This document shows positions 8,798 to 34,530 of a stretch of DNA of 64,000 bases, one piece after another. Each line of letters begins with the position of its first letter. The stretch's first letter is position 1. The notes below the pieces were generated by a model. The model had not been told where the DNA came from, did no database searches, and saw nothing but the letters and a program-made list of their open reading frames with translations. The stretch lies in the IMG/VR virus record IMGVR_UViG_3300045974_000132, positions 124,001 through 188,000 of that record. One strand, 5' to 3'. A program made the translations under genes and the position numbers.

Positions 8798-9523
8798 TTA
8801 TAGGCCAAGTAGCTCCTTACGAGCAATAGTTTCACTACCTACAAGCCGTTCAAAGTATTGTAGTTCTTTTCCTTTTGGCGGTGTTACTTTGATGACTGTC
8901 CGTGTAGCAGGATTGAATGCTACGTGTTCCAACATCTGAGGACTGATTTCACCCCAGCCCTTAGCTCGACCAATTATGTTTGAATTGGCTCCCTTGGGTA
9001 GCTGCTTCTTTACTTCCAAGAAGGTATCCCCGAAGTAGCGTTTGTTCTTGAAGAAGGCTGAATACAGAGGCGCGTCGACAACGTAGATCATGCCCTGTTC
9101 AAACAGTCTGGGCATCAGACGCCAATACAGAGTTAGCAGCAATACGCAAATGTGACGACCGTCTTCGTCAGCATCAGGAAGCAAGAATATCTTACCTACT
9201 CGAAGCTTGCTGTACGCATCTCCTTTGGCTTCCTTACCCACATCAGCTTTGTGAATATCAAAGTTGTAGCCGGTTGCCATTAAGATGTTCTGGACCTTAT
9301 CTGATTCCAGAATCTTGTGGAGCTTCTGCTTTGCAACGTTCATAATCTTACCGTCGAGCTTCATCAACTCTTGGTATTTACTGTCACGCGCATTCTTCCC
9401 AGTGTTGTGGACATACACCCCGTTTCCTAAAGCAAAGTTATGGTACTCAGGTACAGTAGCATCATATACCGGTACAGACTTTTCTAACTTTATTCGACGA
9501 ATAGACTTAACAAAAACACCCAT
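8798..9523 (-). CDS. gyrB: GyrB/ParE C-terminal half fused to split-intein C fragment (IntC, 40 aa, 9404-9523)
   Basis: Intein blocks F/G VYDATVPEYHNF...VHN followed by +1 Thr, then TOPRIM GKIMN, PDADEDGRHI and KGWGE; own SD GAAGGTG. Confidence 0.93.
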   Translation of the reverse strand: MGVFVKSIRRIKLEKSVPVYDATVPEYHNFALGNGVYVHNTGKNARDSKYQELMKLDGKIMNVAKQKLHKILESDKVQNILMATGYNFDIHKADVGKEAKGDAYSKLRVGKIFLLPDADEDGRHICVLLLTLYWRLMPRLFEQGMIYVVDAPLYSAFFKNKRYFGDTFLEVKKQLPKGANSNIIGRAKGWGEISPQMLEHVAFNPATRTVIKVTPPKGKELQYFERLVGSETIARKELLGL

Positions 9524-9575
9524 TAAATCACCTTCTACTAAATACTAATTTAATTGTGTTATAAAGGAGAACATA

Positions 9576-10631
9576 ATGAAATTAGCGGATTTTAAACAAA
9601 ACCTAACTTTAATCAACCGAGAGCAAGTAGCTAATTTTCGTGAGCTATTTCCTTCTAAGTTTACAGAATTACTAAACAAACAAAATGAAGGAAGGGCCAG
9701 GAAAGAGGGTAGATTAAAAGCTCAGATTTTACATGATTTCTTATTCAAAAAACCAAAATGTTCTTGTGGAAAACAAACAAACTGGATGCCTGAAGGCAAA
9801 TATGCAAAGTTTTGTTCGCGTGAATGTGCAGATGGTTCACAAGAAACCGTAGATAAAAGAAGGGCTACTTCTAAGGAAAGATTTGGTGGTGAACCAAATC
9901 TGCATCCTACTATACAAAAGAAAAAGAAGAAGGTATTCCTTGAGAAATACGGTGTAGACAATCCTTCAAAATCAGAAAAGATCAAACGCAAAAAGCGTAA
10001 AACGTCCTTAAGTAATTTTGGAGTAACGCATTGGACTAAAACAGAAGAAGGTCGGCAGTTTATGTCTGAAGAAAATCCGATGTATCTTGCAGCTTCGCTT
10101 GAAACCTTAAAGAAGACGAATCTAAGTAAATACGGTTGCGAGTTTGCTTCTCAGCATAGATCCGTAAAAGCTAAAATGAGAAGGACTAGCTTAAAGCGAT
10201 ACGGTGTTCCTAACGCAGGCGTACTACCGAAATTTCATAGAAAAATATGCTCCGATAGATTTGGTACAACGCATACAGTTCAGGGCTATGAACCCAGAGC
10301 CATTGAATGGCTGTCTAATAGGAAAACCGTTGTAAGCATAAGTTCTTCCAGAAATAGCATACCGGTAATATACTATAAAAGCAATCGTAGCTACTATACT
10401 GACCTAGTCGTTAGTATGAAGTCTGGGTTAAAAAGAATAATAGAAGTAAAGGGCTCCTATCCTCTTAGGTGCTGCTTTGAAACAAACGTTCAGAAATTTA
10501 AAGCTGCTTCAAAGTATGCTAAATCTATAGAGCAGGAGTTTTGGCTGTTCTACTATACAGACAGAGGGCGACTTATAAAGGTTCGGTCGCCCTCAAGAAA
10601 AGACTTAACAAGGCTGCTATCGAGTCTGTAA
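9576..10631 (+). CDS. free-standing putative homing endonuclease (KYG repeats + C-terminal PD-(D/E)xK domain)
   Basis: CxC...CSxxC zinc motif, repeated KYGVxNP-type motifs, C-terminal QGYE...YYTD...IIEVKG; AT-rich; only plus-strand gene; AAGGAG SD and upstream CTAATTTA. Confidence 0.8.
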   Translation: MKLADFKQNLTLINREQVANFRELFPSKFTELLNKQNEGRARKEGRLKAQILHDFLFKKPKCSCGKQTNWMPEGKYAKFCSRECADGSQETVDKRRATSKERFGGEPNLHPTIQKKKKKVFLEKYGVDNPSKSEKIKRKKRKTSLSNFGVTHWTKTEEGRQFMSEENPMYLAASLETLKKTNLSKYGCEFASQHRSVKAKMRRTSLKRYGVPNAGVLPKFHRKICSDRFGTTHTVQGYEPRAIEWLSNRKTVVSISSSRNSIPVIYYKSNRSYYTDLVVSMKSGLKRIIEVKGSYPLRCCFETNVQKFKAASKYAKSIEQEFWLFYYTDRGRLIKVRSPSRKDLTRLLSSL

Positions 10632-12245
10632 CTCTATGCCTTCTTTAAGGTCCTGTGCTTCTGTATAAATACCATCTATCTGCAACCAAGGATGGTCTAT
10701 AGTACATATCCAAGTAGTCCCGTCAGACAGTTCTACTTCAATCAATTCGTCAACCCATTTAGTGAGTCGAGGTTCATCAAAAATGACCTCGACTTCTTTT
10801 TTGGTCTTTAAATTGAAAGCGAAGCCTTTAAACTGTTCTCCAGCTTCCGTACGCTTTGCCATTTCTTCAAAAAGTATAGTAGAGCCGTCAGAAAGAAGAA
10901 CTGGTGTATTTCCAATGAAACAGCCCGCAGCAGAGTCACCTTCAACTAGATACAGCTCACGGGCAGCCACAGGGCATTTCGGAGCAGCAACTAGAGAAGA
11001 AGGAAGCGAAGATTTAGCACGTCCCTTAGCATCAGCAATTGCTGACAACGTTTTCTTGAAAGCTTCCTTTGATACCTTAACAGCCATCGCACGTTTGACA
11101 ATAGCCCGTGCAAGAGGTTTGTTCTTGTCGAAGAATAGTTTCAACTGAGGAAGTAGCAAAGCTTCAACCTGCTTTGACACATTGGAAGTCAGTCGATCCT
11201 TTGTCTGACCGCTGTACTCAGCATGGTGCATCTTCCAGTCAAGAATACCTACAAGTCCCGAGTACGCATCTTTCGGAGCAAACTTCTGGGTCTTCTTCTT
11301 GAAAGGAGCAAGTGCAGCATTCAAAGAATTGCGGAAGCCAAGTTCATGCTCACCGTCATCCCGAGTACGTCCAGAACAGACATAGGTTTCAAGCGCATCA
11401 TCGTCAGAGTAGGTCGACCATTGCAGAGCAACAGACATATCATCATGGATGAAAGAGAACATACGACCTGTTGCAGTTACATCCCGTTCGGCCAACCGTT
11501 GCTTGATAATAGATTCAAGACCGCCCTTATTCAAGAAGGTCTTAGACTTTCCATTAGCACTAAACGTTACTTCCAACCCCGGATTGAGATTAGCAAACGA
11601 CTTCATCCAAGCAGCCGTATAACCAAGATCGAGAGTTGCTTTCGTCTTACCCTTGTCAGTCGATACGATTGTTTGATCTGTTGACCAAAGAACGATTGTC
11701 CCCGATACAGGCTTGTAAGGCATGATCTTAGTAACGCGCACAGGAGGCTTCTCTTTGAGCAACTCTGTTACAGGTTTGCCCTTAGAGAACTTCTGATAGT
11801 GCCAAGCTTTGTCCCGAAACGTCCATACTTCAAAAGAAGAGGATACAGCATTAACACCTGCTGCTCCTACTCCGTGAACACCGCGCGACTTCTTGTAAGC
11901 ACTGTCATTGAACTTACCACCTGTGTGCAGTTCAGTAAAGATCAATGTCAGGGTTGATGCTTTCTTGCTTCTAGGATTCTCGGGATCAACGACCTTTAGG
12001 CCAACAGGGATACCTTGAGCTTTGTCTGCTACAAGATAAACGTTGGCCTTATTGTCAGCATAGACGAAGATGGACTTATTACGACCAGCCATAAATTCGT
12101 CAGCAGAGTTGTCGAAGATTTCCTTGACGCATTGAAATACCATTGAACGACCGCGCTCACCTAGGTACATCCCAGGGTTTTCACGCACATTATCTGGAAA
12201 CTTTAATCTAACAATATTTGCTTCACTGTATGAAGACCTTGCCAT
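10617..12245 (-). CDS. gyrB: GyrB/ParE N-terminal half (GHKL ATPase, transducer) fused to split-intein N fragment (IntN, 101 aa, 10617-10922)
   Basis: VRENPGMYLG, EIFDNSADE, GIP, LHTGGKF, GVHGVG; TOPRIM VEGDSAAG followed by intein block A CFIGNTPV and block B TIDHPW, then a stop. Confidence 0.93.
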   Translation of the reverse strand: MARSSYSEANIVRLKFPDNVRENPGMYLGERGRSMVFQCVKEIFDNSADEFMAGRNKSIFVYADNKANVYLVADKAQGIPVGLKVVDPENPRSKKASTLTLIFTELHTGGKFNDSAYKKSRGVHGVGAAGVNAVSSSFEVWTFRDKAWHYQKFSKGKPVTELLKEKPPVRVTKIMPYKPVSGTIVLWSTDQTIVSTDKGKTKATLDLGYTAAWMKSFANLNPGLEVTFSANGKSKTFLNKGGLESIIKQRLAERDVTATGRMFSFIHDDMSVALQWSTYSDDDALETYVCSGRTRDDGEHELGFRNSLNAALAPFKKKTQKFAPKDAYSGLVGILDWKMHHAEYSGQTKDRLTSNVSKQVEALLLPQLKLFFDKNKPLARAIVKRAMAVKVSKEAFKKTLSAIADAKGRAKSSLPSSLVAAPKCPVAARELYLVEGDSAAGCFIGNTPVLLSDGSTILFEEMAKRTEAGEQFKGFAFNLKTKKEVEVIFDEPRLTKWVDELIEVELSDGTTWICTIDHPWLQIDGIYTEAQDLKEGIELQTR

Positions 12246-13092
12246 GTTTTTTCTCGAAGTGTTTTATTTTCAAAAGGAGTTCTTCTAAAGACAGATGACT
12301 TGTACTATTTTTCTTCATATTAGTTGTACAAGGCATTAGTTTTAGATTCGCGGGATGGCATATAATGTGCAAGGGTACTATGGGTGACCGCTTCACATAT
12401 CTATTCTTTGCTTGTGAATAAATATTCCAACCGTCAAACAAACTTAACTGATGGTCAACATGGTGATCATAAGACCTTAAACTTTTAGTGTCAATAAGGT
12501 CGCCCCACACGACTAAGACGCTCTCAGTAACTTTTCGTACCGCATATTTGTAAGAAGACTGTGTAGTAAAAGTCTTCCTAAAAGCATTGCGTAAACTTTC
12601 TTGATTTCTTTTTACACAATTAGCAGTGCCTAATTCCAAGGAACGCTGAAATGCTAAGTTGACACGCTCTGAGGTAGACCTTAAAGCAATGCCCTCTTCT
12701 TGCAATACATTCTTAACATGTAGAGGGTCCCGTAAAGCCACGCATTCTGTAATTTCCTGAATACTAGCACTATCCTTAACGTACATTCTTATTATTTTTT
12801 GCCTATTTTTCTGTACAATTTGTTTATGATGCTTTATGAGGTCGGCTTTACCTTTAGATACGCCTTCTTCATTAACAATAGCTTGTACAGTAGACATAGA
12901 CAAACCTACTTCCTCTGATATATCTCGGAAGGTCTGATTTTTGTATAAACGTACTACTTTCTTTTTTAAGCGATCTGGGATTATTAAAGCCCACTTACCG
13001 TTTTTGGATTTAGTGTAACTATATCCATTTTTCCATTTAACCGTATCCCCTACGTTTCCGGGATAGGTTCTAGGTATAACATTTTGTAGCAT
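12223..13092 (-). CDS. putative homing endonuclease (HTH + HNH-like)
   Basis: HTH (TFRDISEEVGLSMSTVQAIV) and C-terminal HVDHQ...HPANLKLM...NMKK; AT-rich; overlaps the gyrB start. Confidence 0.7.
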   Translation of the reverse strand: MLQNVIPRTYPGNVGDTVKWKNGYSYTKSKNGKWALIIPDRLKKKVVRLYKNQTFRDISEEVGLSMSTVQAIVNEEGVSKGKADLIKHHKQIVQKNRQKIIRMYVKDSASIQEITECVALRDPLHVKNVLQEEGIALRSTSERVNLAFQRSLELGTANCVKRNQESLRNAFRKTFTTQSSYKYAVRKVTESVLVVWGDLIDTKSLRSYDHHVDHQLSLFDGWNIYSQAKNRYVKRSPIVPLHIICHPANLKLMPCTTNMKKNSTSHLSLEELLLKIKHFEKKHGKVFIQ

Positions 13093-13099
13093 AGTAGAC

Positions 13100-13139
13100 T
13101 CCTAGATACATACACATCTAAATTAGTATGTATCTAGGA
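13100..13139 (-). promoter_or_regulatory. SD-sequestering hairpin containing the CTAATTTA promoter motif
   Basis: 14 bp inverted repeat TCCTAGATACATAC/GTATGTATCTAGGA covering AGGA of the AGGAG SD of the HNH gene; motif at 13119-13126. Confidence 0.75.
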
Positions 13140-13165
13140 CTTCAGTTTATTGTGTATCTTTACAG

Positions 13166-13600
13166 TTATTTGAGAAAGCGCAATTGGTATAAAGTCCCGC
13201 AGATCAGTTCTGAAATCTCAGCAACAATGTTCTGGAGAGCCGGTTGCTCAATACTAGGATATACCGCAGCCGTAAGGGACTTAAGGCTTTCAAAGTAATT
13301 CAGTAGGAAGTCATTGGCCAATTCATTTGACGGTGGGAAGGTAAAATTGAAACTACCGTATTGTAGAATCTCCCCGTAGCAACCTTGTGCGGTTTCAACC
13401 AGACGATCTACTAGATCAACAATACCGTCGTAGTACGCATTCAAAGCCTTGTGCGCTTCATACGCGCCCGGGCCAGTGACACTAAGATGTGCCAGATGTG
13501 CCCAAGTACGACTGTGCATTAGTGACATAACATAGTCACTACCTGCACAGCTAAGAGATTCTTCCTTACGAATAAAGATTTGAGCCATTTGTTTCTCCAA
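13166..13600 (-). CDS. ferritin/Dps-like four-helix protein (phage DUF5856-like)
   Basis: HLAHL...YEAHKALNAYYD...DRLVETAQGCYG...LQNIVAEI...LYQLRFL pattern. Confidence 0.75.
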   Translation of the reverse strand: MEKQMAQIFIRKEESLSCAGSDYVMSLMHSRTWAHLAHLSVTGPGAYEAHKALNAYYDGIVDLVDRLVETAQGCYGEILQYGSFNFTFPPSNELANDFLLNYFESLKSLTAAVYPSIEQPALQNIVAEISELICGTLYQLRFLK

Positions 13601-14908
13601 TTACATAATGATTATGCCCGTTGTTGGGCGAGTCCCGCAGACATACAAGCACCGCAAAGCTTCCAGCTTATCTCGATTGCTCATAATGTCGCCCATGTCA
13701 ATAAACACATTTCTAAATGTGCTACCTTGACCCCGGTGGGCTGTTAAACCATAGCTATGACGTATCTTATGGAAGTTGTTTTTCAACGCCCAGAAGAATT
13801 TCCATTTAGTACGATCTTGCTTTGCAACACCTGCAAGTTCATTCAATTGCTTGGCTAGATCAGAAGCACTACTCTCATGGATTACACTTACTTCCAATTC
13901 GCCTTCATTGTCATCTAGCTGGATCACAATGTTGTAGCACTTTAGGTCTTTGTAGTAGGTGTTATGTGTAACGACAACAGACTTGATACTACCTTCGTCG
14001 TCGATGTTTGCTTTAATACCCTTGTCACCTGTAACAGGTTCTGCAACCATTACACGATCACCTACAATCCAAGGTTCATTGTACGCATGGCGTCCAAACG
14101 TATGGCCTCGAATCGTATCATTCAATTGATTGACAGTTGCATTACGCCAAGCTAATGCTTTAGTGTGGTCAATCTCATTGAATAATCCCTGCTTACTTGC
14201 TTTTTCCAGATAGTGAAGGAAGTCACGTTGTTTAACTCGCCAGACACCTTCTTTGTACTTATGCCTACTACGAATGTCAAGCTGCCAGTCAGGATAGTGG
14301 ATAATCTGCTCCCGTATGTTCGTAGCAAGATTCAGAATCTGGTTGTCGTAACGAACAACTTCTGTCAGTTCAACGCTGGGCATCTTGCGCTTCCAAATAA
14401 GTGATTCATCTTCACCTATAGGATTCAACTGAGCGCGGTCGGCCGAATAAACCCATTTTACTTGTGGGTATAGTTTGGAGATATACTCAATGTACGTCAC
14501 CATATCTACGCACAACATACTACCTTCGTCGATATAAACAATATCCCATCTATTCATATCAACTGGCTTGTGCGGAAACTCAAGCACTAAGCGATCTTCA
14601 TCTGCTACCATCCTAACGCCTAGGACAGAGTAAATGGTCTTACAAGAACCGTTCGGTACCTTCTTAGAAAATACCTTTGTTGCTTTGTTAGTTGGGGCGC
14701 TATTGATCTGAGCTTTGTAGCTGTACTTCTCATTGACACAACCGAGTAAGTACGTCTTGCCAGTTCCAGCATAGCCTGCAAGTCTAAAGAAGCGTTGAGT
14801 AGGATGCTCTAGGAAAGCAGCAATCTTTGTGAAGGCTTCTCTTTGCGGTTGTATTAGTGTATTGAAGTCCAAAGCCGACACCCTAAATAGTAAAAGGTAG
14901 CAATTCAA
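13601..14908 (-). CDS. dda: Dda/RecD-like SF1B DNA helicase
   Basis: GYAGTGKT, APTNKA, IDEGSM, DRAQLNPI, TAHRGQGSTF, LYVCGTR. Confidence 0.9.
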   Translation of the reverse strand: MNCYLLLFRVSALDFNTLIQPQREAFTKIAAFLEHPTQRFFRLAGYAGTGKTYLLGCVNEKYSYKAQINSAPTNKATKVFSKKVPNGSCKTIYSVLGVRMVADEDRLVLEFPHKPVDMNRWDIVYIDEGSMLCVDMVTYIEYISKLYPQVKWVYSADRAQLNPIGEDESLIWKRKMPSVELTEVVRYDNQILNLATNIREQIIHYPDWQLDIRSRHKYKEGVWRVKQRDFLHYLEKASKQGLFNEIDHTKALAWRNATVNQLNDTIRGHTFGRHAYNEPWIVGDRVMVAEPVTGDKGIKANIDDEGSIKSVVVTHNTYYKDLKCYNIVIQLDDNEGELEVSVIHESSASDLAKQLNELAGVAKQDRTKWKFFWALKNNFHKIRHSYGLTAHRGQGSTFRNVFIDMGDIMSNRDKLEALRCLYVCGTRPTTGIIIM

Positions 14909-14930
14909 AAGAAAAGCTACCTTTTATTCA

Positions 14931-15710
14931 TTACTTGTATATTGATACCAAGTTGGAGAACCTATCTTTGTTACTCTTTACAATTTTGTCAAATTCATCA
15001 AAGGGAACTAAGATGTTGGCACACTCAGTTTTATCCAAGTAGCAGTGTATGTATTTTAGAATCTCACCATACATGCCCGGATCACCGTTGATAGCTTCTG
15101 CAAAACTAGAAGGGAGGCCCCATTCCTTCATCAAAGAAACTGATATAAGGGAAGCTATCTCTTCAGAAACCTTAGCATACTCTACAATAGGCGTAGAGGT
15201 TTGCTCGAAGTAATCAATGATCGGAAGGCAACCTATGCTGTGCAAGATACCAATAATCATTGCAACGTTCGGATCATAACGACGATCCTCAAGATGGGCT
15301 GTAAGCAAGTGAGACAGAGCACCTACTTCTACACTATGATGCCATGTCTCTTCGAGCAACACCTTAAGATCAAAGTTCTTAGACCTGAACATATCCCTAA
15401 TTGCGATGCTGATAGCCAAGTTCTTTACCAACACAATACCTAGAATCGACAAAGCTGTATATAGCGATGTGATGGGCTTGATGGGCTTAAGAGCGGGGCT
15501 ATTTACCACCTGAAGTAATCGAGCAGCTAAGGTTTGATGCGATTCAATAGCGGCTGAAATATCTACCAAGCCCTTAGTGTCGTCATTCATCAAAGCATTG
15601 ATCTTCAAAACTACTTCAGGTGAAGCAGGTAGCCTCAAACTCTTTGCAGAAAGGCGCTCAATAATGTCTTGAGATAATACACTTATTCCATCACTGGGCA
15701 GAGGGGACAT
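14931..15710 (-). CDS. HDOD domain protein
   Basis: LPASPEV...LAARLLQVVNSP...ALSILG...WHHSVEV...GILHSIG...WGLP. Confidence 0.88.
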   Translation of the reverse strand: MSPLPSDGISVLSQDIIERLSAKSLRLPASPEVVLKINALMNDDTKGLVDISAAIESHQTLAARLLQVVNSPALKPIKPITSLYTALSILGIVLVKNLAISIAIRDMFRSKNFDLKVLLEETWHHSVEVGALSHLLTAHLEDRRYDPNVAMIIGILHSIGCLPIIDYFEQTSTPIVEYAKVSEEIASLISVSLMKEWGLPSSFAEAINGDPGMYGEILKYIHCYLDKTECANILVPFDEFDKIVKSNKDRFSNLVSIYK

Positions 15711-17178
15711 CGTCAGGTACTCCCAAAAATTCATACAGTTGAGTTAGAGGTAGAGGCTTAGATATGTAGTAGCCTTGAACTAGGTCGCACTTTAAAGCGC
15801 GTAGAGCATCCTCTGTTTTTTGATCTTCTACACCTTCTGCACACACTGTACAACCTACGCTATGTGCCAACTGAATGATAGAACTTATGATATTGTAGTC
15901 CTGCTTATTCTCAAGCATCAAGGCTACGAAGGACTGGTCAATCTTAATTTCCTTAACAGGCAGACTCTTTAGATACACAAGAGAAGACTGACCAATACCA
16001 AAGTCATCAATCGAGATTGACAAGCCTAGCATGTCTAAACAAAGGAGAATCTTGATGAATTCCTCACTACCTTGATTCAGGGAAGTTTCAGTTACTTCCA
16101 ATATCAAGTTTTGTGGATCAATCGTATGTGTAGCAAGCTCTTTTGATATATGGAGTATCAAGTCACCCTGTGCTAAACTATACGGTGAGATATTGACAGA
16201 CACATTGGTAAGTACGCCTAACTCACTCAACTTAACAAAGTCGTCTAGTGCTTGATGCACAACCCAGTTTGTTAAGGTCTTAATCAGGCCAGTATGCTCG
16301 GCAATAGGTATAAACTTACTAGGAGGTATTTCACCTAGTAGAGCATGCGTCCATCTAGCTAAAGCTTCGATACCTACAATCTTACCAGTCGTAAGACTCT
16401 TCTTAGGTTGATAGTGCAGTTTGAGTTCACCTGCTTCAACTGCTTGCCTTAGATCAGCCCGCAGAGTAAGAGACTCGATTGAACTCACGTCCTGGTCCTT
16501 ATCATAGATAAAGAATCCTAGACGGCCATTCTTCGCCGTGTACATTGCAACGTCTGCACACTTAACTAGATCAACGGCTGTAACACCGTGTGCTGGGTAT
16601 AAAGCGATACCCAAGCTTGCACCTACTTCCGAGATACTCTCATTGAGTTTAAACGGAGCATCAAAAGAATGCAGCAATCGGTTGGCAATAGAGGAGAGAT
16701 TTACATCACTCTCAAAATTGGTAAAGATGAAGGCGAATTCATCACCGCCTATACGAGCTAGGTAGTCATGATTACGTAAACCTTTTGACAAACGATGGGC
16801 AACTTGCTTTAGGAGTTCATCTCCTACTAAGTGCCCCATTGTGTCATTCACGATTTTAAACTTATTCAGATCCAACAACATCACAGCTATTGTTTTATTT
16901 TCAGGAGAAGCTAATATCTTTTGTAGGATGTCATTGTATGAAGATCGGTTTAGCAAGCCTGTTAAAGGATCGTGCCTTGCTTTATACTCTAATACCTTAG
17001 TTTTCTTATATAGTTTTTTAAGGTAGAGGCCAAATAATACGGTAACGATTAAACTTGATACAGCTACAGCTATAGCAAGCTGCCTATCACCTACGGCTAA
17101 AGCGGCACTTGAAACTATTACGTTTAGTACCACAGAGCCTATAGGTAGGACTTTTCTGTATATATCTTCGGAAAGCAT
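15691..17178 (-). CDS. membrane-anchored GGDEF-EAL diguanylate cyclase/phosphodiesterase
   Basis: Two N-terminal TM helices, HDPLTGLLNR, DLNKFKIVND, RxxD I-site, GGDEF, EALARW, EVTE, DDFG, KID, EGVE, QGY. Confidence 0.95.
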   Translation of the reverse strand: MLSEDIYRKVLPIGSVVLNVIVSSAALAVGDRQLAIAVAVSSLIVTVLFGLYLKKLYKKTKVLEYKARHDPLTGLLNRSSYNDILQKILASPENKTIAVMLLDLNKFKIVNDTMGHLVGDELLKQVAHRLSKGLRNHDYLARIGGDEFAFIFTNFESDVNLSSIANRLLHSFDAPFKLNESISEVGASLGIALYPAHGVTAVDLVKCADVAMYTAKNGRLGFFIYDKDQDVSSIESLTLRADLRQAVEAGELKLHYQPKKSLTTGKIVGIEALARWTHALLGEIPPSKFIPIAEHTGLIKTLTNWVVHQALDDFVKLSELGVLTNVSVNISPYSLAQGDLILHISKELATHTIDPQNLILEVTETSLNQGSEEFIKILLCLDMLGLSISIDDFGIGQSSLVYLKSLPVKEIKIDQSFVALMLENKQDYNIISSIIQLAHSVGCTVCAEGVEDQKTEDALRALKCDLVQGYYISKPLPLTQLYEFLGVPDDVPSAQ

Positions 17179-17259
17179 TGGATTACCTCAGTCGCTTATC
17201 AAGCGAAACTTGACATGCGTATAAATTAGAAAGTAGCACAATGCAGAAATTCATTTGTG

Positions 17260-17670
17260 TTAATAGTGTATAGGATACGCTAAAGCATTTGCGTATTTAA
17301 GCAACGACTGCTTATACGCATCAGCATACCCCGGATTGTATTTTTGTTCTGCAGGTGAACAGGGCCCATACTGACCTTTTACTACTACGACTTCCCTAGA
17401 ATTAGCTTCATCTTTTAGGATGTGTGCCCACTCATGGGATTGGGTTTCACGACTGTAGTAAGCAAAGCTACAAATAACAATACCTGTGTTAGAAGTATAT
17501 GAATACCTAGTACCAAACAGGGTATCTTCATTTTCATAGTTCAGCATAGTACCGGCAACTAGCCGTGGCCCAGTCGGTAGACCTTTTGCATCACATATAC
17601 AAGCTTCCGTGTAATCTTCAAAAGGAGTTAAACATACGCAGCATTTGAATACGTTTGTAGGAATAGGCAT
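17260..17670 (-). CDS. hypothetical protein
   Basis: 136 aa ORF. Confidence 0.55.
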   Translation of the reverse strand: MPIPTNVFKCCVCLTPFEDYTEACICDAKGLPTGPRLVAGTMLNYENEDTLFGTRYSYTSNTGIVICSFAYYSRETQSHEWAHILKDEANSREVVVVKGQYGPCSPAEQKYNPGYADAYKQSLLKYANALAYPIHY

Positions 17671-17697
17671 TATATTATCTCGTATAGGTAGATTGTA

Positions 17698-18276
17698 TTA
17701 CCAACGGCCGCCTAGGAGTTTTAAGTTCTCAACTAGCACAGCAGGTACTTGAGGCTTAAACGCTTCAAGCTCTAAATCAAAATCCGCTTTTTCAATGTAG
17801 GTAATTTGTTGAATCTTAGAAGTCAACAAAGCAATAGGGTCGACTTGATTAGTCCCTGTCGGAGGGTAGGCATATGTAGCATACGGTTTATTTATAATCA
17901 GCAAACCCACAAAATAAGCTAGGCTTGTTTCTGTTGTGTATATGCTACCGCGCGTGATAAACGGTTGAACTTTTTGAGGGATGTCTTGCCCAAACATTAG
18001 GGAATAGAATATCTCAATACATACCCTATTCAAAGAGTTCTCGACCTTAACAAAACTCGGACTTCGCCAAAAGCCCGGTACATCTTTCAACAGAATCAAG
18101 TTGTCTGTCGGGGAGTTTAGCATATAGTGCTCCAGTTTGATGGGAAGGTATATTGGTAGCCCATTACTACCTAGAGGAGGCCTTAAACGTGCACCGAGCA
18201 GACCTACCCTACTCACGGTTAAGACGGGATAATTATCACCGGTCAGATATACCAGCCATACGGATCTATCCCACAT
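17698..18276 (-). CDS. hypothetical protein (true start may be downstream)
   Basis: ORF; no motif recognised. Confidence 0.5.
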   Translation of the reverse strand: MWDRSVWLVYLTGDNYPVLTVSRVGLLGARLRPPLGSNGLPIYLPIKLEHYMLNSPTDNLILLKDVPGFWRSPSFVKVENSLNRVCIEIFYSLMFGQDIPQKVQPFITRGSIYTTETSLAYFVGLLIINKPYATYAYPPTGTNQVDPIALLTSKIQQITYIEKADFDLELEAFKPQVPAVLVENLKLLGGRW

Positions 18277-18500
18277 GATGTGAAACGTAGGGTATATTCA
18301 GTTCTTTTAAATTACTATGCAGCCTACTTCTTCGACAAACTTAATGTCTTCCAGTCGGTAGACCGTAGGCTCTATAAAACTAGTCCTACGGAACTCTGCG
18401 TTGTGCAGTCTGCCCATGATTATATGTACCGTTTTTTCCGTCTTATCAACTACCTTAACAAGTGTCAAAGCACTTGAGTAAGGAAGTAGCACATAATAAG

Positions 18501-18584
18501 CCTTATTTACGATAGGCTCTAAAGATGCTTGATTATCAGCCACCTTATTTACGATAGGCTCTAAAGATGCTTGATTATCAGCCA
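18501..18584. repeat. perfect 42 bp tandem duplication
   Basis: CCTTATTTACGATAGGCTCTAAAGATGCTTGATTATCAGCCA twice, in frame within ORF 18307-18600. Confidence 0.95.
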
Positions 18585-19099
18585 CCTTTTTCATCCTCAA
18601 TAGGTTGTGCGTTCATCAGCAAGAAGTGAGGTTGATCGTCAATCCAGATGTGCGGTTTAATACCGAACTTCAACAGAAACGGTAGCTTTGCTTCACGCGC
18701 AGTAGGGACAATCCTATGTACAAGTTCGGTAAGTCTGTCACACATGTCATCTGTTTCTTCAAAGGTACGCATAGTTGCGATCAACACTTCATGTCCACGT
18801 GATTGTGCAAGTTTGATTACCTCAAGCCAGAAGTCAGGATCCCGCGTATAGGTGCCATCATAGTCTAGGGCAAGAGTTATGGGAGGTACTTTGGCCTTCG
18901 GTGCCGCCTTAGGCGCCTTAGCAGCTTGCCAAATTTCCCAAGCAAACTGTTTGGAGGACATTTTAGTATAGCGGCCGTTAGGGTACGTAGCACTATCAAA
19001 CAACGTATCGGCCGGATGCCAAGTAGCAATCTGGTCTCTACTATACTGAGTAACGTACCACGCTTCAAACTCCTGACGCAGAAGATCAAGATTCGACAT
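18578..19099 (-). CDS. HAD-superfamily phosphatase domain protein
   Basis: ALDYDGT motif I, IATMR motif II, Lys, WIDDQP motif IV. Confidence 0.75.
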   Translation of the reverse strand: MSNLDLLRQEFEAWYVTQYSRDQIATWHPADTLFDSATYPNGRYTKMSSKQFAWEIWQAAKAPKAAPKAKVPPITLALDYDGTYTRDPDFWLEVIKLAQSRGHEVLIATMRTFEETDDMCDRLTELVHRIVPTAREAKLPFLLKFGIKPHIWIDDQPHFLLMNAQPIEDEKGG

Positions 19100-20982
19100 T
19101 TGCCACCTCTTCATCCATCGGGCAAATAGAGCAGCCCTTATTAATTAACGGACAAACTTCATAGTCACCGACTGGGTTTAGCTCATTGAGCTTTTCAGCA
19201 TCGGACTCAGCATATGCATGATCTTCATACACAGGTAGAATGCCTGCTGTACTACCTGTGTGCGTCCATGAAGCAGAGTTACACTGACATACACCTTGCT
19301 TTGGGTCTTCTTGCCAGTAGTGCGTCCATGAAGGGCCAGCATGTTTTACAATCGCATACTTTAAAGAATCCTCAGCCATTTTCTTTTCCATCCAGGAAGC
19401 CAACTAACATAAATAACTTATTAGCAGCTTGTTGAAATTGAGTTGCAGCGGTACGCAAAGCTTGCATATCTTTTAAGGAAAGTTCAGCAGGCAGTTCATC
19501 CGTGATTTCTTTTCCACTCTTTATACACCTATGCACGTTCTTAATTCTTAGTAACGCGGGTGACATTACTTATCTCCGAATTTTTGCTGAGTCAAAGAAC
19601 CCAAGATTCGATTAGCTTCAGCCGCTGCTTGAGCAGATTGAGTGGCAACCAAAGTTAGTCCATGAATATCATCAGGAGTCAAAGGGCGTTTTGATAAACG
19701 GACGGCTGTTTTCTTTGCTGCAAGTATAGACGTAACAAGCTCTACCATTGCTCGATCATTACGGGTAGCCATTTTAGTGACCCAAGACACGCATACAGTA
19801 AAAGAAAGAATTTGTCTCTCGACACTCGTTCCACATACTTACTTCATACCATATAGCGAGAGCAACTACTAAAGCAGTACCTACAATTGGGAGGACATTT
19901 TTCATTTGCGATTCCTTTGTTTGGATTTCTTAGCTGCTTTACGCTTTGCCTTAGCATCAGACTTCTTTACGTGCTTACGGTTGTTACCGAAGCGAATAGG
20001 TTGGTCATCACCGTTGAAGTCATCGTCTGAAGACTGACAAGGAGCAGTCTCGTCCTCTCCAAAGTAGTCATCTTCAGGTTCTTTATAAGCAGGCTCAGAA
20101 GTGGATTGTTCTGCCTTCTGTGCTTCTTGGTATAGTCTAGCCGACTGCGAATCAAGATTAAACCACGGTTCATTGTTCATTTTCTATTCCTACGCTTTGA
20201 CTGTTTCGCAATCTTTGCCTTACGACGTTTCAACTCAGGATCGTACCACGGCTTGTTGTTACCCCCCTCTACGTGAAGGAGTAGGTCCAAAATTAGGTAC
20301 AATCTTGCTGGGCTCATATATCTTAGTAGCCGGAAAATCATTTTCATTCCAACCACTTAAAGCAGCAGGCATCAATGAAGAAAGAATACCTGGACCCGCA
20401 CCTATAACTAATGGGCCGTTCTCTTTATTTCTTCTGGCGAGTTCTTCATCTTCAGGTAGAACTATCGTTATACCTAAGTCACGTAGATGCGTAATCTCTT
20501 CTTCAGGCATATGGTGAAGTAAATCGTGAGGCAGCATTATCGTGAGCCCTATAGCTTCTTCAATATCTGCGGCCTCTCCATCTATCGTAGCACGAAGGTG
20601 TTTCAGTATATCAAGACTGAGTTTGCTGCCCTCTTTGGGTGCATCAAAAGCAAGTAACGGATCAGAGGAAACGTTAATCATCATAGTAATCCTCAATTGT
20701 AGGAGTGCCTCGCCCTGAGCAAGGTCCAAATTCAGGCCAGCAATGAGTGCGTTTCATTTCTAACCACATTGCAGACATGCACATTTCAATAAACCAGTAT
20801 TCCCAACGGCCCCCGTACCACTTACGATACCACTTGAATCGACTAAGAGGGACACGCACTAAAGACAAACGCATCCAAGTAGGCATCGACATATTCATGC
20901 AATACAGAATCACAGCACAACACAGTTCTAGGATTACAATGGCAGCTACCGCAAGTGCGAGTGTCTTTAGCGTTTCCACGAT

Positions 20983-28090: not shown

Positions 28091-28492
28091 TTAGACTACA
28101 AAACCGTTTTCAAATACAGCCTTCAGCTTTTCGCTGATACACTCTTGACCAGGAAGCAGCTTAAACAGGACTGTATGGCCGTTAACAAAGTATTGTGCTG
28201 CACGAAAACGACCCTCAATCTTGTCAAAGCGTTCATTGTCATGACACCAAGCGATGGACACTTCAAGCATTCGAGCATAGGGCTTCTCCGGCATTTGCCA
28301 GCAGACAACAGCCCCACCGAATTGATACGGTTGCTCCGAGTCTTCATCAAAATTTCGGATGTACGTGAATTCAAGGGCATGATCTGCAACCATTGTCTTC
28401 AGTTCATCATGGCGTTGCTTGCGCTCACGCCGAGCTTGTTCCTTTTTGGCAATCTTTTCAGTCAAAACAGCATTATCCAGCATCAAAGACAT
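28091..28492 (-). CDS. hypothetical protein
   Basis: 133 aa ORF with AAGGAG SD. Confidence 0.65.
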   Translation of the reverse strand: MSLMLDNAVLTEKIAKKEQARRERKQRHDELKTMVADHALEFTYIRNFDEDSEQPYQFGGAVVCWQMPEKPYARMLEVSIAWCHDNERFDKIEGRFRAAQYFVNGHTVLFKLLPGQECISEKLKAVFENGFVV

Positions 28493-29592
28493 GTGATACT
28501 CCTTGGTTGATCGTCGTTTGTGTTATTTAGTTTTTACAGTTTCTTCATCAAGCATCCCCAACCAGCGTAGCGTTTTCAGATGCTGATTCCATAGAGCGGC
28601 CATCGGAGGGTTAACATACGTTCCCCGCATGTGATGCTGTGTCAAGTTACGACCACTCTGCATTTCTTCAAAAGCAATTCGTGCAGTTGCAATTGTTATC
28701 TTCGTAGGAAGAGTACGAAGGGAATTGTCATTGTGACAAACTGGACAACTACCTTGTATAGATGAATAGGTCATCCTCCTCCTCGTCATCATCAATATCA
28801 GGGAGCTCGATCTTGCTGTAAGGGCCGCAGTTGCTCTCGTACATCACCCCATTGATTTCTACCTTCAAACCCATTTCAACAAGCAAGTCCCGCAATAGCG
28901 TATTGATAGTACCGTCGGGCTTACGAAGCTTCTCCATGTAATTAGGATATAGCTCCTGAGCTTGGTCTATTATAATAATATTACCTTGAACTGAAATACG
29001 CATAATCAAAGCTCCTTATAGACTGGCACACTCATTGAGCATTGTATTAAAGCCTAGCTCTGTTATGTGCCATAACTTAGGTCTTACCTTACCTTTAGCA
29101 GGGCCACGTATATGATAGCAGAAACCTTTACATTCAAGTTGCTGCAACATACTACCTATCACATGAGCAGGTGTAAAAACAGAAGCGTGTCTAAACCCAG
29201 ATACAACACCAGGCACAAGCTTGTTAGCTAGGTTTGGGCCCTCTGCTAAATTCGAGAGTAGCTTAATTTGCTTTGGTGTCATTAGGAGGAACCTCACCAC
29301 ATACAACTATACCATCAACGATAACAGTAAGCTTGATTGTGCCGTATTCGCTGGCTAGAAGTTCATCCTTACCATCCCAGCGATTCCAAAGTTCCCAGCC
29401 ACCCATACGAGTGCAAGTAAGCATAAGGCCATAACTAACATCGAACAGTCGATAGCGATTACCGCCAAACTCCACTTCCACATCATGGTAGCTGCGTACT
29501 TGAGGAATAACTTTAGGGACATCCGACATGCTAGTCTCCGAACGTGACAATAGGCGCTTCGGCGCCTACTAAGTTTTAAATACTTCAGTAAT

Positions 29593-29677
29593 TGGTGCCC
29601 AGGAAGGGACTCGAACCCTTACACCTTTCGATACCAGAACCTAAATCTGGCGCTTCTACCAATTTAGCCACCTGGGC
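29593..29677 (-). tRNA. tRNA-Leu(UAG)
   Basis: Cloverleaf GCCCAGG/CCTGGGC, loop TTTAGGT, long variable arm, TTCGAGT, ACCA. Confidence 0.95.
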
Positions 29678-29683
29678 ATTGAT

Positions 29684-29856
29684 GCTGATGTTGGGCGCTA
29701 CTCCAACTCCGGTACTCCACGTCAGTTACAGTGTCCTTCGGGTGTTCGACGCTTCGCCAACACATACGTGCCGCTACTGGTGGTCTACAATGTGCCCTTC
29801 GCTGCTTACTGCTCCGGCCTTGTTCTCTGACAGGTCTGCTTTCCCTGTAGATCAGC
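29684..29856 (-). ncRNA. putative structured ncRNA immediately upstream of tRNA-Leu
   Basis: Intergenic, closed by GCTGAT/ATCAGC, with internal hairpins and a T-arm-like GTTGG-AGTAGCGC-CCAAC. Confidence 0.45.
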
Positions 29857-29865
29857 TAAACTATT

Positions 29866-30120
29866 TTACTTTCCAAACAAACGATCATGCAGCTTTATAG
29901 AGATATACATACCTATAGCAGCACCCGTGCCACAGTAGGGTATCAGTACCCATCCGTCTCGCACAATCAAACCTACTAGCCAAACATCAGCACAAGCCAT
30001 AAAGTAGGATGTAATAACAATAGAAGCCATCTTGTTTGCTATTACGTTTTTGTGCTGAAAGCCTTTGAGGAAGACAGAAGCAAATGTCGCCAATGCTGCC
30101 AGCAAATAACTTGTACTCAT
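29866..30120 (-). CDS. small membrane protein
   Basis: Three hydrophobic segments. Confidence 0.65.
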   Translation of the reverse strand: MSTSYLLAALATFASVFLKGFQHKNVIANKMASIVITSYFMACADVWLVGLIVRDGWVLIPYCGTGAAIGMYISIKLHDRLFGK

Positions 30121-30395
30121 ATTAAACACAGATGATCGTAAGATTGCCGACGATCATACTTTCGGAATTCTAAATTGAAGCCGTCTGTTACAGGAGTAGG
30201 TGTTTTAGGGTACTCGGCATCCGGTGACAAAATCCGTCGCATTAAACCAGGCATGTTCATATGCACCTTCATACACTCTGCAAATATATCAACAGCTGGG
30301 TACTTTTTGTACAGACGATCAACGAAAGCACGATAGCTTTTACTTTTGTACCGTTTCTTGTTCCGGGTCTTGTGCGTTTTCATTATATTCTCATT

Positions 30396-30534
30396 AGTGA
30401 AAGGGATACACGATTCCCCTAAGTCCCTGCTTTCCATCGTGCTACCTCGCAGCGATACCGAGGAGGTTATGCAGGGTGCTTTGCGTTTAGGATTTAACCC
30501 TACTTCCACCGACTTATCTGAGCAGAATTTCACT
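30396..30534 (-). ncRNA. putative structured RNA / leader
   Basis: Nested stems AGTGAAA/TTTCACT, AAGTC/GACTT, CCCTGC/GCAGGG, ACCTC/GAGGT; downstream gene probably starts at 30383. Confidence 0.4.
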
Positions 30535-30593
30535 GCATTGTTTCAGCGTTACGGTGCGATGTGGCGTCTACGGCCCTAAACTTATTGCATTGG

Positions 30594-30974
30594 TCAATCA
30601 ATGATCTGCCAAATCTTACCTTGTGCACGGATTTCAGATACCGTGTCCAGCGAGACTGTACGATATTGAGCCAACTTAATATCGAACACTGTCAAGTACG
30701 GACGTTCGTCTTTCTCAACATTGTTTTGACCGCCCTTTAAGAAAGCCTTGACTCCAAGGCGACCTGTGAGGGTGCGCTTCTCTCCACTAAGCTTGATATA
30801 GTCCACAGAAACGAACAAGCCGTTCTGACGAACAATGAAAGTGCGAAGATTGACACGATTAAGCTGTTTGACCTCTTTCGGCATCTTCTTGGAAGCTTTA
30901 GGCTTGTGGCTGTTAGCGACTGAAGTGGACACCGAAAGATTTTGAGCAGTAGTAAAAGCAGATTGAACTTGCAT
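30594..30974 (-). CDS. SH3/Sm-like beta-barrel protein (DUF2693/WYL-like)
   Basis: VDYIKLSGEKRTLTGRLGV...VFDIKLAQYRTV pattern. Confidence 0.6.
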   Translation of the reverse strand: MQVQSAFTTAQNLSVSTSVANSHKPKASKKMPKEVKQLNRVNLRTFIVRQNGLFVSVDYIKLSGEKRTLTGRLGVKAFLKGGQNNVEKDERPYLTVFDIKLAQYRTVSLDTVSEIRAQGKIWQIID

Positions 30975-31128
30975 GATATTTCTCCGAAAAGTAGTTGCAT
31001 GTGAAAGTAATCGGGACACCCCAACTACTAGCGATCAACCTGCTACAGTTGACCCGCCGTAAGCCTCGTCACACATAACAACCTATCTAGCAAATCTCTA
31101 CTACTGGCTACAAAACTTGTTTACAGTT

Positions 31129-31317
31129 TTACTTAATCATTACATTGCAGGAACAGATTCCTGTATCACCTTTAGGGCCTATTAAACCCTGAGGCCCAGT
31201 AGGACCCGGAGGACCCGGCTGGCTAGGGGGCAGTTTACGAAGTGCTTTCTTCACTGCCTTAGCAACCAATTTCTTGATCTGCTTTTTACTAAAATGAGTG
31301 CATCCGCAGGGAGTCAT
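31129..31317 (-). CDS. small collagen-repeat protein with terminal Cys pairs
   Basis: GPPGPTGPQGLIGPKGDTG; CGC and CSC at the termini. Confidence 0.6.
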   Translation of the reverse strand: MTPCGCTHFSKKQIKKLVAKAVKKALRKLPPSQPGPPGPTGPQGLIGPKGDTGICSCNVMIK

Positions 31318-33205: not shown

Positions 33206-33590
33206 GCCGCTCACCTATTTTGGTAATAAGGACTCCGTCATTATCAGGAGAGTGAGCGGCTTAACAAACCAAAGTCTGTTAGTGACCCCATCCGTTTAGG
33301 TGCTGTTAGGCAGCCTTCCGGAAAGACGCATCATTCGCGGCAATTACAAGTTTAGCCCGGTTTAACGAGAGTACAATGCTCGGATCGTTCTTTATCAACT
33401 ACTCATGCCCAATCGAAACCAGGTCAGGCCCATCAGGATCGTTCTATGTATCACCCACCCCGGTGACCTCAGCCTTGCGGTAGGACCTTTCGGCACACAG
33501 AACGATTTTGGTGGACCTGGGGAGAATCGAACTCCCGTCTTGAACACTTTTATTTCAAAAGTCTCATAAGCAAAGTTGTTCCGGTAGCTA
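33206..33590 (-). ncRNA. ssrA: circularly permuted (two-piece) tmRNA
   Basis: T-arm and CAGGTCC-ACCA (33509-33540) lie upstream of the 5' strand GGGCCTG (33431); G3-U70 pair; tag ORF (A)ANDASFRKAA* at 33306-33341; outer boundaries approximate. Confidence 0.9.
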
Positions 33591-33646
33591 ATCGGCTTTA
33601 CTTACATACGATCATATTCCTTAACACGCCAATGATTACGTGTTAG

Positions 33647-34455: not shown

Positions 34456-34530
34456 TGGTTGAGGATGACGGGATCGAACCGACGACCCTCTGCTTGCAAG
34501 CAGAGGCTCTCCCAACTGAGCTAATCCCCA
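34456..34530 (-). tRNA. atypical tRNA-Ala(UGC), possibly pseudo
   Basis: U1-A72, G3-U70, ACCA; palindromic anticodon arm with a 6-nt loop TTGCAA. Confidence 0.75.

Follow-up and report, generated by a model that had tools for sequence, protein, structure and literature searches.

The stretch of DNA analyzed here, 64,000 nucleotides corresponding to bases 124,001-188,000 of the 286,393-bp IMG/VR virus record IMGVR_UViG_3300045974_000132 (hereafter, the window, to which coordinates refer unless a genome or locus is named), encodes two overlapping genes for the turnover of the bacterial messenger cyclic dimeric GMP (c-di-GMP). One of these genes (15691..17178, minus strand) specifies a 495-aa bifunctional-type c-di-GMP enzyme in which two predicted transmembrane (TM) helices precede a GGDEF and an EAL domain, and the other (14931..15734, minus strand) specifies a stand-alone HDOD protein. 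The locus is, very probably, a functional, phage-owned c-di-GMP turnover cassette, and its net activity appears, on balance and with modest confidence, to be that of a c-di-GMP-specific phosphodiesterase that converts c-di-GMP to pGpG. Both active sites are intact, and the direction of catalysis is beyond what sequence alone can tell, but the observations lean toward phosphodiesterase because the EAL domain is invariant at its catalytic positions and is the more conserved of the two, the GGDEF domain has decayed twice, the characterized relatives are phosphodiesterases, and there are precedents for EAL-HDOD proteins with this activity.

The enzyme, its HDOD partner and the direction of catalysis

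A database search with the enzyme recovered twelve proteins that are 45-75% identical to it and share its length and architecture, beyond which only sensor-bearing bacterial GGDEF-EAL proteins were found, at 46% identity or less. The first ~60 aa of the enzyme form a hairpin of two hydrophobic helices (aa ~10 to 53 or 54, 17020..17151, minus strand, with hydropathy peaks at aa 10 and aa 34) that are joined by a four-residue turn and followed almost immediately by the GGDEF domain; in this N-terminus, sequence reading and hydropathy reveal no sensor domain, whether periplasmic or cytoplasmic. Within the clade, the hairpin sequences are only ~20-25% identical, with hydrophobicity and architecture kept. 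The GGDEF domain (aa 67-217, 16528..16980, minus strand; Pfam PF00990, E 1e-41) carries its signature motif at aa 144-148, invariant across the 13 aligned clade members, and, five residues ahead of it, an I-site, R135-N-H-D138, of which the RxxD pattern is retained in proteins P0001-P0010, becomes KxxD in P0011 and is absent from P0012 and P0013. The GTP- and Mg2+-contacting residues D103, N111, D120 and K216 are invariant, and R219 is present; we take these five to be the equivalents of D327, N335, D344, K442 and R446 of PleD. In the alignment with RmcA, R219 lies one residue nearer to K216, a single-residue deletion. In the EAL domain (aa 241-475, 15754..16458, minus strand; Pfam PF00563, E 3e-69), the EAL motif occupies aa 271-273 (E271 and L273, with R275), DDFG aa 391-394 and EGVE aa 448-451, and E271, L273 and R275, together with the other catalytic residues N329, E361, E364, D391, D392, K412, E448 and Q468, are identical in all 21 sequences compared, some of which are only 38-40% identical overall. 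The mean pairwise identity in the clade is 59% for the EAL domain vs 50% for the GGDEF domain. The original prediction of an apparently intact cyclase (GGDEF, RxxD) and phosphodiesterase (EAL, DDFG, EGVE) in a single protein that overlaps an HDOD gene is thus borne out in every element.

The HDOD gene is recognizable by its match to PF08668 (E 1e-33 over aa 35-215 of the 267-aa open reading frame (ORF)), and the protein also matches solved HDOD structures (PDB 3i7a at 1e-14 and 3hc1 at 2e-12). Its translation more likely starts at the second ATG, at 15710, yielding 259 aa, because a GGGAG lies 9 nt upstream of this codon and the N-termini of the relatives align to M9. With this start, the two genes, which are read in different frames, would overlap by 20 nt (15691..15710, minus strand, ending with the enzyme stop codon TGA at 15693-15691) rather than by 44 nt, in what is a probable translational-coupling junction. 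Comparable overlaps, of 8-23 nt, are found in L004, L006, L007, L010, L110, L111 and L179, the overlap in L124 is 4 nt, and in L009 and L109, the two genes are separated by 9-nt gaps. Only H165 is invariant among the HDODs, and in the near clade, H165-S166 takes the place of the HD dyad, the second position being S, E, D, R or L elsewhere, so that the phage protein is unlikely to be a hydrolase; the H...HD...D metal-binding set of the HD-superfamily phosphohydrolases, including HD-GYP, is incomplete in it. In the iron-binding HDOD structure 3hc1, two iron ions are held by five histidines and one aspartate, and the HDOD protein SadB functions as a proteolysis or protein adaptor that does not bind c-di-GMP or another ligand (PMC12075610). 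Given the loss of the HD dyad and the SadB precedent, the phage HDOD protein is most likely a regulatory or adaptor subunit of the enzyme.

Several observations point to hydrolysis as the net activity. In locus L110, the GGDEF domain is degenerate: the motif reads GVDEF, several GTP-contact residues are lost, and the domain scores 99 bits in Pfam instead of ~140. The EAL domain and the HDOD protein of this locus are intact. In L124 (6340-6420) and in L125, which comes from another sample, a GDDEF motif is accompanied by a one-base insertion at the motif that splits the gene; both loci keep a 324-aa EAL ORF and the HDOD gene, after which the next gene encodes the tail sheath. The best PDB match of the enzyme is 5m3c (E 2e-91 over aa 68-479), which bears only the name 'Diguanylate cyclase' in the search output and which we take to be the GGDEF-EAL core of RmcA (PA0575); further matches include 4rnh (8e-83) and 5xgb (4e-57), and MorA, DosP and RbdA follow 5m3c. 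The five best partial matches in NCBIfam are all to phosphodiesterases, namely, DibA, PRK10060, the Tlr1612 family, DosP and GepA. RmcA, MorA and RbdA behave as GTP-dependent phosphodiesterases, their EAL domain being gated by an intact, GTP-binding GGDEF domain, and more generally, only one domain is usually active in GGDEF-EAL hybrids, those with intact motifs often being devoid of cyclase activity (PMC7825114). Like the phage enzyme, RmcA, RbdA and MorA of Pseudomonas aeruginosa combine, in tandem, an intact GGDEF motif with all EAL catalytic residues, and RmcA also has an RxxD I-site (RDVD in the alignment). However, these bacterial proteins carry large sensor modules, such as periplasmic and PAS ones, where the phage enzyme has only the ~60-aa hairpin, and the phage enzyme is at most ~40% identical to this group, is followed by an HDOD gene and is encoded by a virus.

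The HDOD partner is consistent with this leaning. EAL-only proteins have HDOD as a partner domain more often than any other (128 of 1805; PMC2952852), and the EAL-HDOD proteins ZpdA (VC0515) and CdgJ (VC0137) of Vibrio cholerae are active phosphodiesterases that promote a low-c-di-GMP state (PMC12607878, PMC4624765). These two proteins, VC1851 and a CdgJ-like enzyme of Aeromonas, in which a point mutation in the HDOD domain yields a phenotype (bioRxiv 10.1101/2022.07.25.501442), have an EAL domain followed by HDOD, the same order as in the phage cassette; however, proteins of the CdgJ/ZpdA type are single polypeptides with neither a GGDEF domain nor a membrane anchor, whereas the phage has two overlapping genes. 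Zinc inhibits ZpdA.

In the scenario that we infer, from the location of the enzyme to the benefit for the phage, the enzyme would be anchored in the host inner membrane by the bare two-helix hairpin and, because it has no sensor domain, would act as soon as it is made, rather than in response to a signal. The HDOD protein would be made in step with the enzyme through coupled translation and, most likely, would bind or regulate it, in a role similar to that of HDOD fused behind the EAL domain in CdgJ and ZpdA, and the GGDEF domain would serve mainly as a GTP-binding allosteric gate and a c-di-GMP-sensing I-site module, as in RmcA, RbdA and MorA. During infection, host c-di-GMP would then fall, host sensors would be overridden, and the cell would be held in a motile, low-matrix state; general c-di-GMP biology suggests that the lowered level could alter c-di-GMP-dependent receptors as well. 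No PilZ gene was detected in the phage genome, nor did any c-di-GMP-I or -II riboswitch score above threshold there, and therefore, the targets of the messenger must be host effectors.

A possible, although less probable, alternative is that the enzyme works on balance as a diguanylate cyclase, or as a two-way clamp, and makes c-di-GMP up to the level set by feedback at the I-site, with the EAL domain and the HDOD protein trimming the pool. At elevated c-di-GMP, flagella and pili would be halted and surface polysaccharides altered, with conceivable gains for the phage through superinfection exclusion, retention of the infected cell within a dense patch of hosts or diversion of host resources. 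Much of what weighs against net hydrolysis falls here. The cyclase active site, the GTP-contact residues and the I-site (GGDEF, D103, N111, D120, K216 and RxxD) are invariant in the near clade, as in a working cyclase; the hairpin nearly abuts the GGDEF domain, and this short link from TM2 could hold two GGDEF domains as a productive dimer; and the frameshift in L124 and L125 could be a sequencing error. MorA and RbdA display cyclase activity under some conditions (PMC7825114), cyclase genes are present on Mu-like viral contigs (PMC7785012), and the YIP peptides of PB1-like lytic phages, likewise a viral means of c-di-GMP manipulation although, unlike the cassette, small activators of a host cyclase, bind YfiN, raise c-di-GMP and reduce motility (PMC8085984). 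Conversely, points against a predominant cyclase role are the dispensability of the GGDEF domain in two cassette lineages that retain EAL and HDOD, the missing I-site in P0012 and P0013, the stronger constraint on the EAL domain, the phosphodiesterase activity of the best-matching characterized relatives, and the one-residue deletion in the K216..R219 phosphate-binding segment.

Other unfavorable points for net hydrolysis come from the EAL domain itself and from the HDOD partner. Canonical EAL domains have DFG(T/A)GYSS in loop 6, as known from the RocR literature; in the phage enzyme, this loop is DFGIGQSS, and the clade consensus is DFG[IVTM]GQSS, with Q in place of Y. The phage HDOD protein is not closest to EAL-fused HDODs: its top matches are stand-alone or N-terminally extended proteins, the extension being a cyclic nucleotide monophosphate-binding domain in both checked relatives that have a recognizable domain there, and among the 150 best matches of the HDOD profile, no protein is long enough for an EAL-HDOD fusion. 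The argument from fusions therefore holds only at the level of the domain family. Among the 80 nearest bacterial HDOD loci, only 3-4 adjoin a GGDEF-EAL gene, in reversed order and with a GAF sensor in the enzyme. Finally, the pairing is not universal in viruses, given that the viral contig L108 encodes the enzyme without HDOD, and phage NCTB encodes a stand-alone 282-aa HDOD protein, annotated as hypothetical (LT598654.1 127011-127859; L026:7031-7879), the neighbors of which are thymidylate synthase, Dam methylase and DHFR, with no GGDEF or EAL gene nearby.

The lone HDOD of NCTB is also compatible with a non-catalytic trigger or scaffold function, whereby the enzyme and the HDOD protein would bind host c-di-GMP effectors or regulators, the catalytic residues being used for ligand sensing only. 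Trigger-type GGDEF-EAL proteins reportedly exist in Escherichia coli, for example, the trigger enzyme YciR, and the ligand-independent HDOD adaptor SadB (PMC12075610) fits such a role. Nevertheless, we consider it very unlikely because the metal-binding and general-base residues of the EAL domain are invariant at 38-40% identity, beyond what ligand binding usually needs. A doubtful variant of the scheme is a phage-specific, timed switch, in which the HDOD protein, or falling GTP in the course of infection, would toggle the bifunctional, sensorless enzyme from one mode to the other, cyclase or phosphodiesterase, giving a programmed pulse: c-di-GMP would first be high, with receptors and motility shut down and rivals excluded, and then low, favoring dispersal and release. 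If this were true, it would be the first defined function of HDOD, a domain of wide distribution, that of a mode-setting subunit of EAL enzymes.

Phage ownership and descent of the pair

The genome from which the window derives carries direct terminal repeats and has an estimated completeness of 100%, and the cassette is located 139-141 kb into it. It encodes a tail sheath, a baseplate wedge, collagen-like fibers, a DnaB-like helicase and topoisomerase II, and its proteins are 32-43% identical to those of its nearest cultured or named relatives, namely, NCTB, PaBG and Lu11 (both phages of Pseudomonas) and jumbo phages of Erwinia (tail sheath 42-43% identical to those of NCTB and PaBG; DnaB-like helicase 40% identical to that of PaBG). 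Thus, the phage appears to be distantly related to the PaBG/NCTB-like jumbo myoviruses, at the family level at best. A search for a T4 gp23-type capsid produced no match in the genome, and none in the control either. Among the fiber genes, one at genome positions 28334-31219 (L017:8334-11219) encodes a protein of 961 aa that matches phage tail-fiber families through many collagen-like repeats. No integrase was detected above threshold in the genome, and hence, the lineage is apparently virulent; the only integrase-like signal is a sub-threshold tyrosine-recombinase-like segment (22 bits, E 1e-5) in a 547-aa ORF (L176) at genome positions 102136-103770.

The possibility that the cassette is host DNA, misjoined to the phage contig or inserted very recently, is suggested by the fact that its nearest non-phage homologs, at 41-46% identity, are bacterial. 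This possibility is effectively refuted. The source DNA is a pond metagenome in which a single 56,851-nt contig spans positions 13000-18500 with zero mismatches and flat depth over the locus, read coverage being a check that the original prediction had proposed, and a second pond sample contains identical low-depth fragments across the Dda helicase, HDOD, enzyme and upstream genes. The GC content, the GC content at third codon positions and the codon adaptation of the enzyme and HDOD genes all fall within 1 standard deviation of the other genes of the phage. The same synteny recurs in at least 3 other phage lineages from different samples, and the enzymes form a deep group of their own in the phylogenetic tree. 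Because the cassette lies inside a complete, terminally redundant 286-kb genome, is covered by a spanning contig, has native composition and is embedded in conserved synteny, assembly chimerism and recent host capture are excluded for practical purposes, and the cassette belongs to the phage.

The order enzyme > HDOD > Dda > DUF5856 > topoisomerase II is repeated in L004/L005, L006 and L007/L008, contigs of 36-76 kb from different samples that represent three of the twelve relatives, with 54-75% identity. At other genomic positions, the HDOD gene lies directly behind the enzyme gene in P0010, P0011, P0013, L109, L110, L111, L124 and L179, including contigs of 250 kb (L111), 191 kb (L124) and 167 kb (L179); in the neighborhoods of these distant members, there are Laminin_G-type fiber-like genes, queuosine-type genes or a tail sheath gene directly downstream. 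When the HDOD profile was run against 1.84 billion representatives, ~30 clusters of stand-alone 245-290-aa proteins matched end to end with E <1e-50, and for both of the two that were looked up, the gene immediately follows one that ends in EAL, in one case on a phage-like contig of 167 kb. A well-supported branch of the maximum-likelihood tree (Shimodaira-Hasegawa-like approximate likelihood ratio test (SH-aLRT) 99-100) has the thirteen phage enzymes together on one side, with the ungrouped protein P0099 placed, without resolution, at the base of the phage clade. The conserved synteny, the pairing at other genomic positions and the separate group in the tree together show that the enzyme-HDOD pair is an old cassette, the two genes of which travel jointly between large phages.

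The nearest bacterial relatives of the phage HDOD come mostly from Gammaproteobacteria. We rejected direct descent of the phage pair from a gammaproteobacterial pair of HDOD and GAF-GGDEF-EAL genes: the phage clade is not nested within the bacterial GAF-GGDEF-EAL group, and the gene order is reversed. In the loci of this kind (L040, from a Thiogranum metagenome-assembled genome, L068 and L082), a separate ~277-aa HDOD gene adjoins a GGDEF-EAL gene on the same strand, and the enzymes are 42-43% and the HDODs ~30% identical to those of the phage; these loci differ from the phage cassette in that HDOD comes first, the genes do not overlap, and the enzyme carries a GAF sensor but lacks the membrane hairpin.

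The distant cassette contig L009 contains, just upstream of the cassette (L009:3369-9655), an Apyc1-like metallo-beta-lactamase, a ResIII helicase, GTP cyclohydrolase I and a PTPS-like gene, a set that suggests 7-deazaguanine-type DNA modification, and in L124, likewise, PTPS is found beside the cassette.

The upstream box and the neighboring genes

The cassette is preceded by a CTAATTTA box (17222..17229, minus strand), a -10-like candidate phage promoter 44 nt ahead of the enzyme ATG. The motif occurs 8 times in the 64-kb window, compared with 2.6 copies expected, a count that no shuffled sequence attained, and 27 times genome-wide; 18 of the 27 copies are intergenic in a genome that is ~94% coding, and most lie 12-45 nt before the start of an ORF on the same strand, the gene positions used for these genome-wide statistics having been obtained with a crude longest-ORF caller. 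A longer shared box, TTTCTAATTTATAC, is also present upstream of the orthologous enzyme gene in the closest relative, L004. In agreement with the original prediction that a recurrent motif ahead of the cassette embeds it in the phage gene organization, the enrichment, the mostly intergenic and oriented placement and the retention of the box in L004 make CTAATTTA resemble a promoter element of the phage. Between the box and the Shine-Dalgarno sequence, a 5' leader hairpin is predicted (17193..17219, minus strand; fold -13 kcal/mol, z -2.6); the leader of L004 has a hairpin in the same place that differs in sequence and is weaker (z -1.4), not distinguishable from shuffled sequence. Within window positions 13000-19500, there is no excess of sigma-70-like promoters or intrinsic terminators.

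Downstream, the HDOD gene adjoins, as had been proposed, a Dda/PIF1-type helicase gene (13601..14908, minus strand; Pfam AAA_30, PIF1 and UvrD_C_2), the product of which is 38% identical to an annotated dda; past the helicase come DUF5856 and then the large subunit of topoisomerase II. Between the latter two genes, a 289-aa ORF (12223-13126, minus strand) has weak N-terminal helix-turn-helix matches, and the arms of a perfect 13-nt inverted repeat, CCTAGATACATAC / GTATGTATCTAGG, lie on either side of its CTAATTTA box (13119-13126). The relatives have no counterpart of the same size, with either no gene at this place or ORFs of 61-125 aa; this ORF may be a further mobile insertion, for example, a homing endonuclease. 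The topoisomerase II large-subunit gene itself, a single intact gene of 645-647 aa in the relatives, is fractured across 8798-12245: a GyrB-type N part that ends in an intein-like segment (10617..12245, minus strand), a homing endonuclease ORF, phrog_3339 (9576..10631, plus strand), and an intein C-terminal splicing segment with Toprim and GyrB_C (8798..9523, minus strand). This arrangement resembles a split intein, the two halves of which are separated by a free-standing endonuclease.

Upstream of the cassette, two ORFs of 136 aa (with a cysteine-rich N-terminus) and 192 aa (17260-18276, minus strand) have no match in Pfam, NCBIfam or PADLOC, and L004 carries ORFs of similar size at the equivalent position. 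Elsewhere in the window, a cluster of seven tRNA genes (29.6-50.1 kb) includes a permuted, two-piece-type transfer-messenger RNA (tmRNA) gene (33215-33601, minus strand; RF04321 at 89 bits over 33306-33571), for which the predicted tag, from the longer ARAGORN span, is AANDASFRKAA. The permuted tmRNA is possibly a clue to the host, although, together with the phage relatives, it gives host hints only. A tRNA-like gene at 34456-34530 (minus strand) scores 49.7 bits with the Rfam tRNA model and was assigned by ARAGORN a four-base anticodon (tgca) and no amino acid.

Host lifestyle, immune signals and the place of the cassette among viral systems

The original prediction offered two outlets for the cassette, the rewiring of host lifestyle and the degradation of an immune signal. 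Under the second of these, the EAL domain would destroy the c-di-GMP alarm of a defense system of the cyclic oligonucleotide-based antiphage signaling (CBASS) type with a STING-like effector, and so prevent cell suicide. The enzymatic activity called for is the same as in the favored reading. EAL domains act specifically on c-di-GMP, and that of the phage enzyme has an intact catalytic site; phages carry nucleases against immune nucleotides; and in the distant contig L009, the Apyc1-like metallo-beta-lactamase is only ~6 kb away from the cassette. However, the same protein keeps a conserved cyclase site and an I-site and thus would make the alarm signal itself, and the enzyme is predicted to be membrane-anchored, whereas a soluble enzyme would be the simpler means of removing a signal that diffuses through the cytosol. 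GGDEF, EAL and HDOD are the only matches of the cassette proteins, with no sign of the 2H-phosphoesterase or metallo-beta-lactamase folds of Acb1 and Apyc1, and the only Apyc1-like match in the genome of the phage itself is sub-threshold and ~87 kb away. Furthermore, the closest relatives in culture are phages of Pseudomonas and Erwinia, two genera that use c-di-GMP as a housekeeping messenger, and the nearest homologs in bacteria come from Gammaproteobacteria; to our knowledge, STING-CBASS systems occur in bacteria that lack housekeeping c-di-GMP signaling, a poor fit to such hosts. PADLOC yielded no match to the cassette, which is weak evidence given that this resource covers defense rather than anti-defense proteins. 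Taken together, these features make an anti-CBASS function unlikely, decidedly more so than cyclase activity, and the rewiring of host lifestyle appears to be the better fit.

The claim that complete diguanylate cyclase and phosphodiesterase genes are rarely found in lytic phages stands for isolated phages but not for viral contigs from metagenomes. Among 50,697 phage records, no isolated phage encodes a full GGDEF-EAL protein together with HDOD, the full-length matches in this collection being bacterial records or short unannotated fragments filed as phage, and a DNA search of the same records with the locus gave no match. In IMG/VR, by contrast, 68 loci encode relatives of GGDEF and/or EAL, and published work describes diguanylate cyclases in viral contigs that are Mu-like (PMC7785012); these contigs and Bacillus phage G, in which the match, under gp350, is to GGDEF only, contain single GGDEF genes, located mostly on temperate elements, unlike the full cassette. 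Single-protein scans of IMG/VR recovered no close relatives, and a scan of it with an HDOD alignment yielded none that could be confirmed. The alignment of all HDODs is too divergent for a genome scan, for which a narrower one was used. Full-text searches of the literature turned up no account of a GGDEF-EAL enzyme that is complete but sensorless, is partnered by HDOD and is conserved across large phages of the virulent type.

The GGDEF, EAL and HDOD domains of this locus are ordinary members of well-known families, and c-di-GMP genes have been described before, from mobile elements as well as from viral contigs (PMC7785012). In most bacteria, c-di-GMP sets the choice between swimming and settling and governs surface structures, many of which are phage receptors, and phage interference with this messenger has so far been known mainly in the form of small peptides that act on host enzymes and isolated cyclase genes on temperate elements. 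Here, large, apparently virulent phages carry a complete c-di-GMP turnover enzyme of their own, stripped of sensors, and the enzyme and its HDOD partner have spread jointly through large phages of several environments. The cassette thus offers a compact natural system for understanding what a phage gains by fixing the c-di-GMP level of its host and what HDOD does for EAL enzymes, and the sensorless enzyme could serve as a genetic tool for clamping c-di-GMP.

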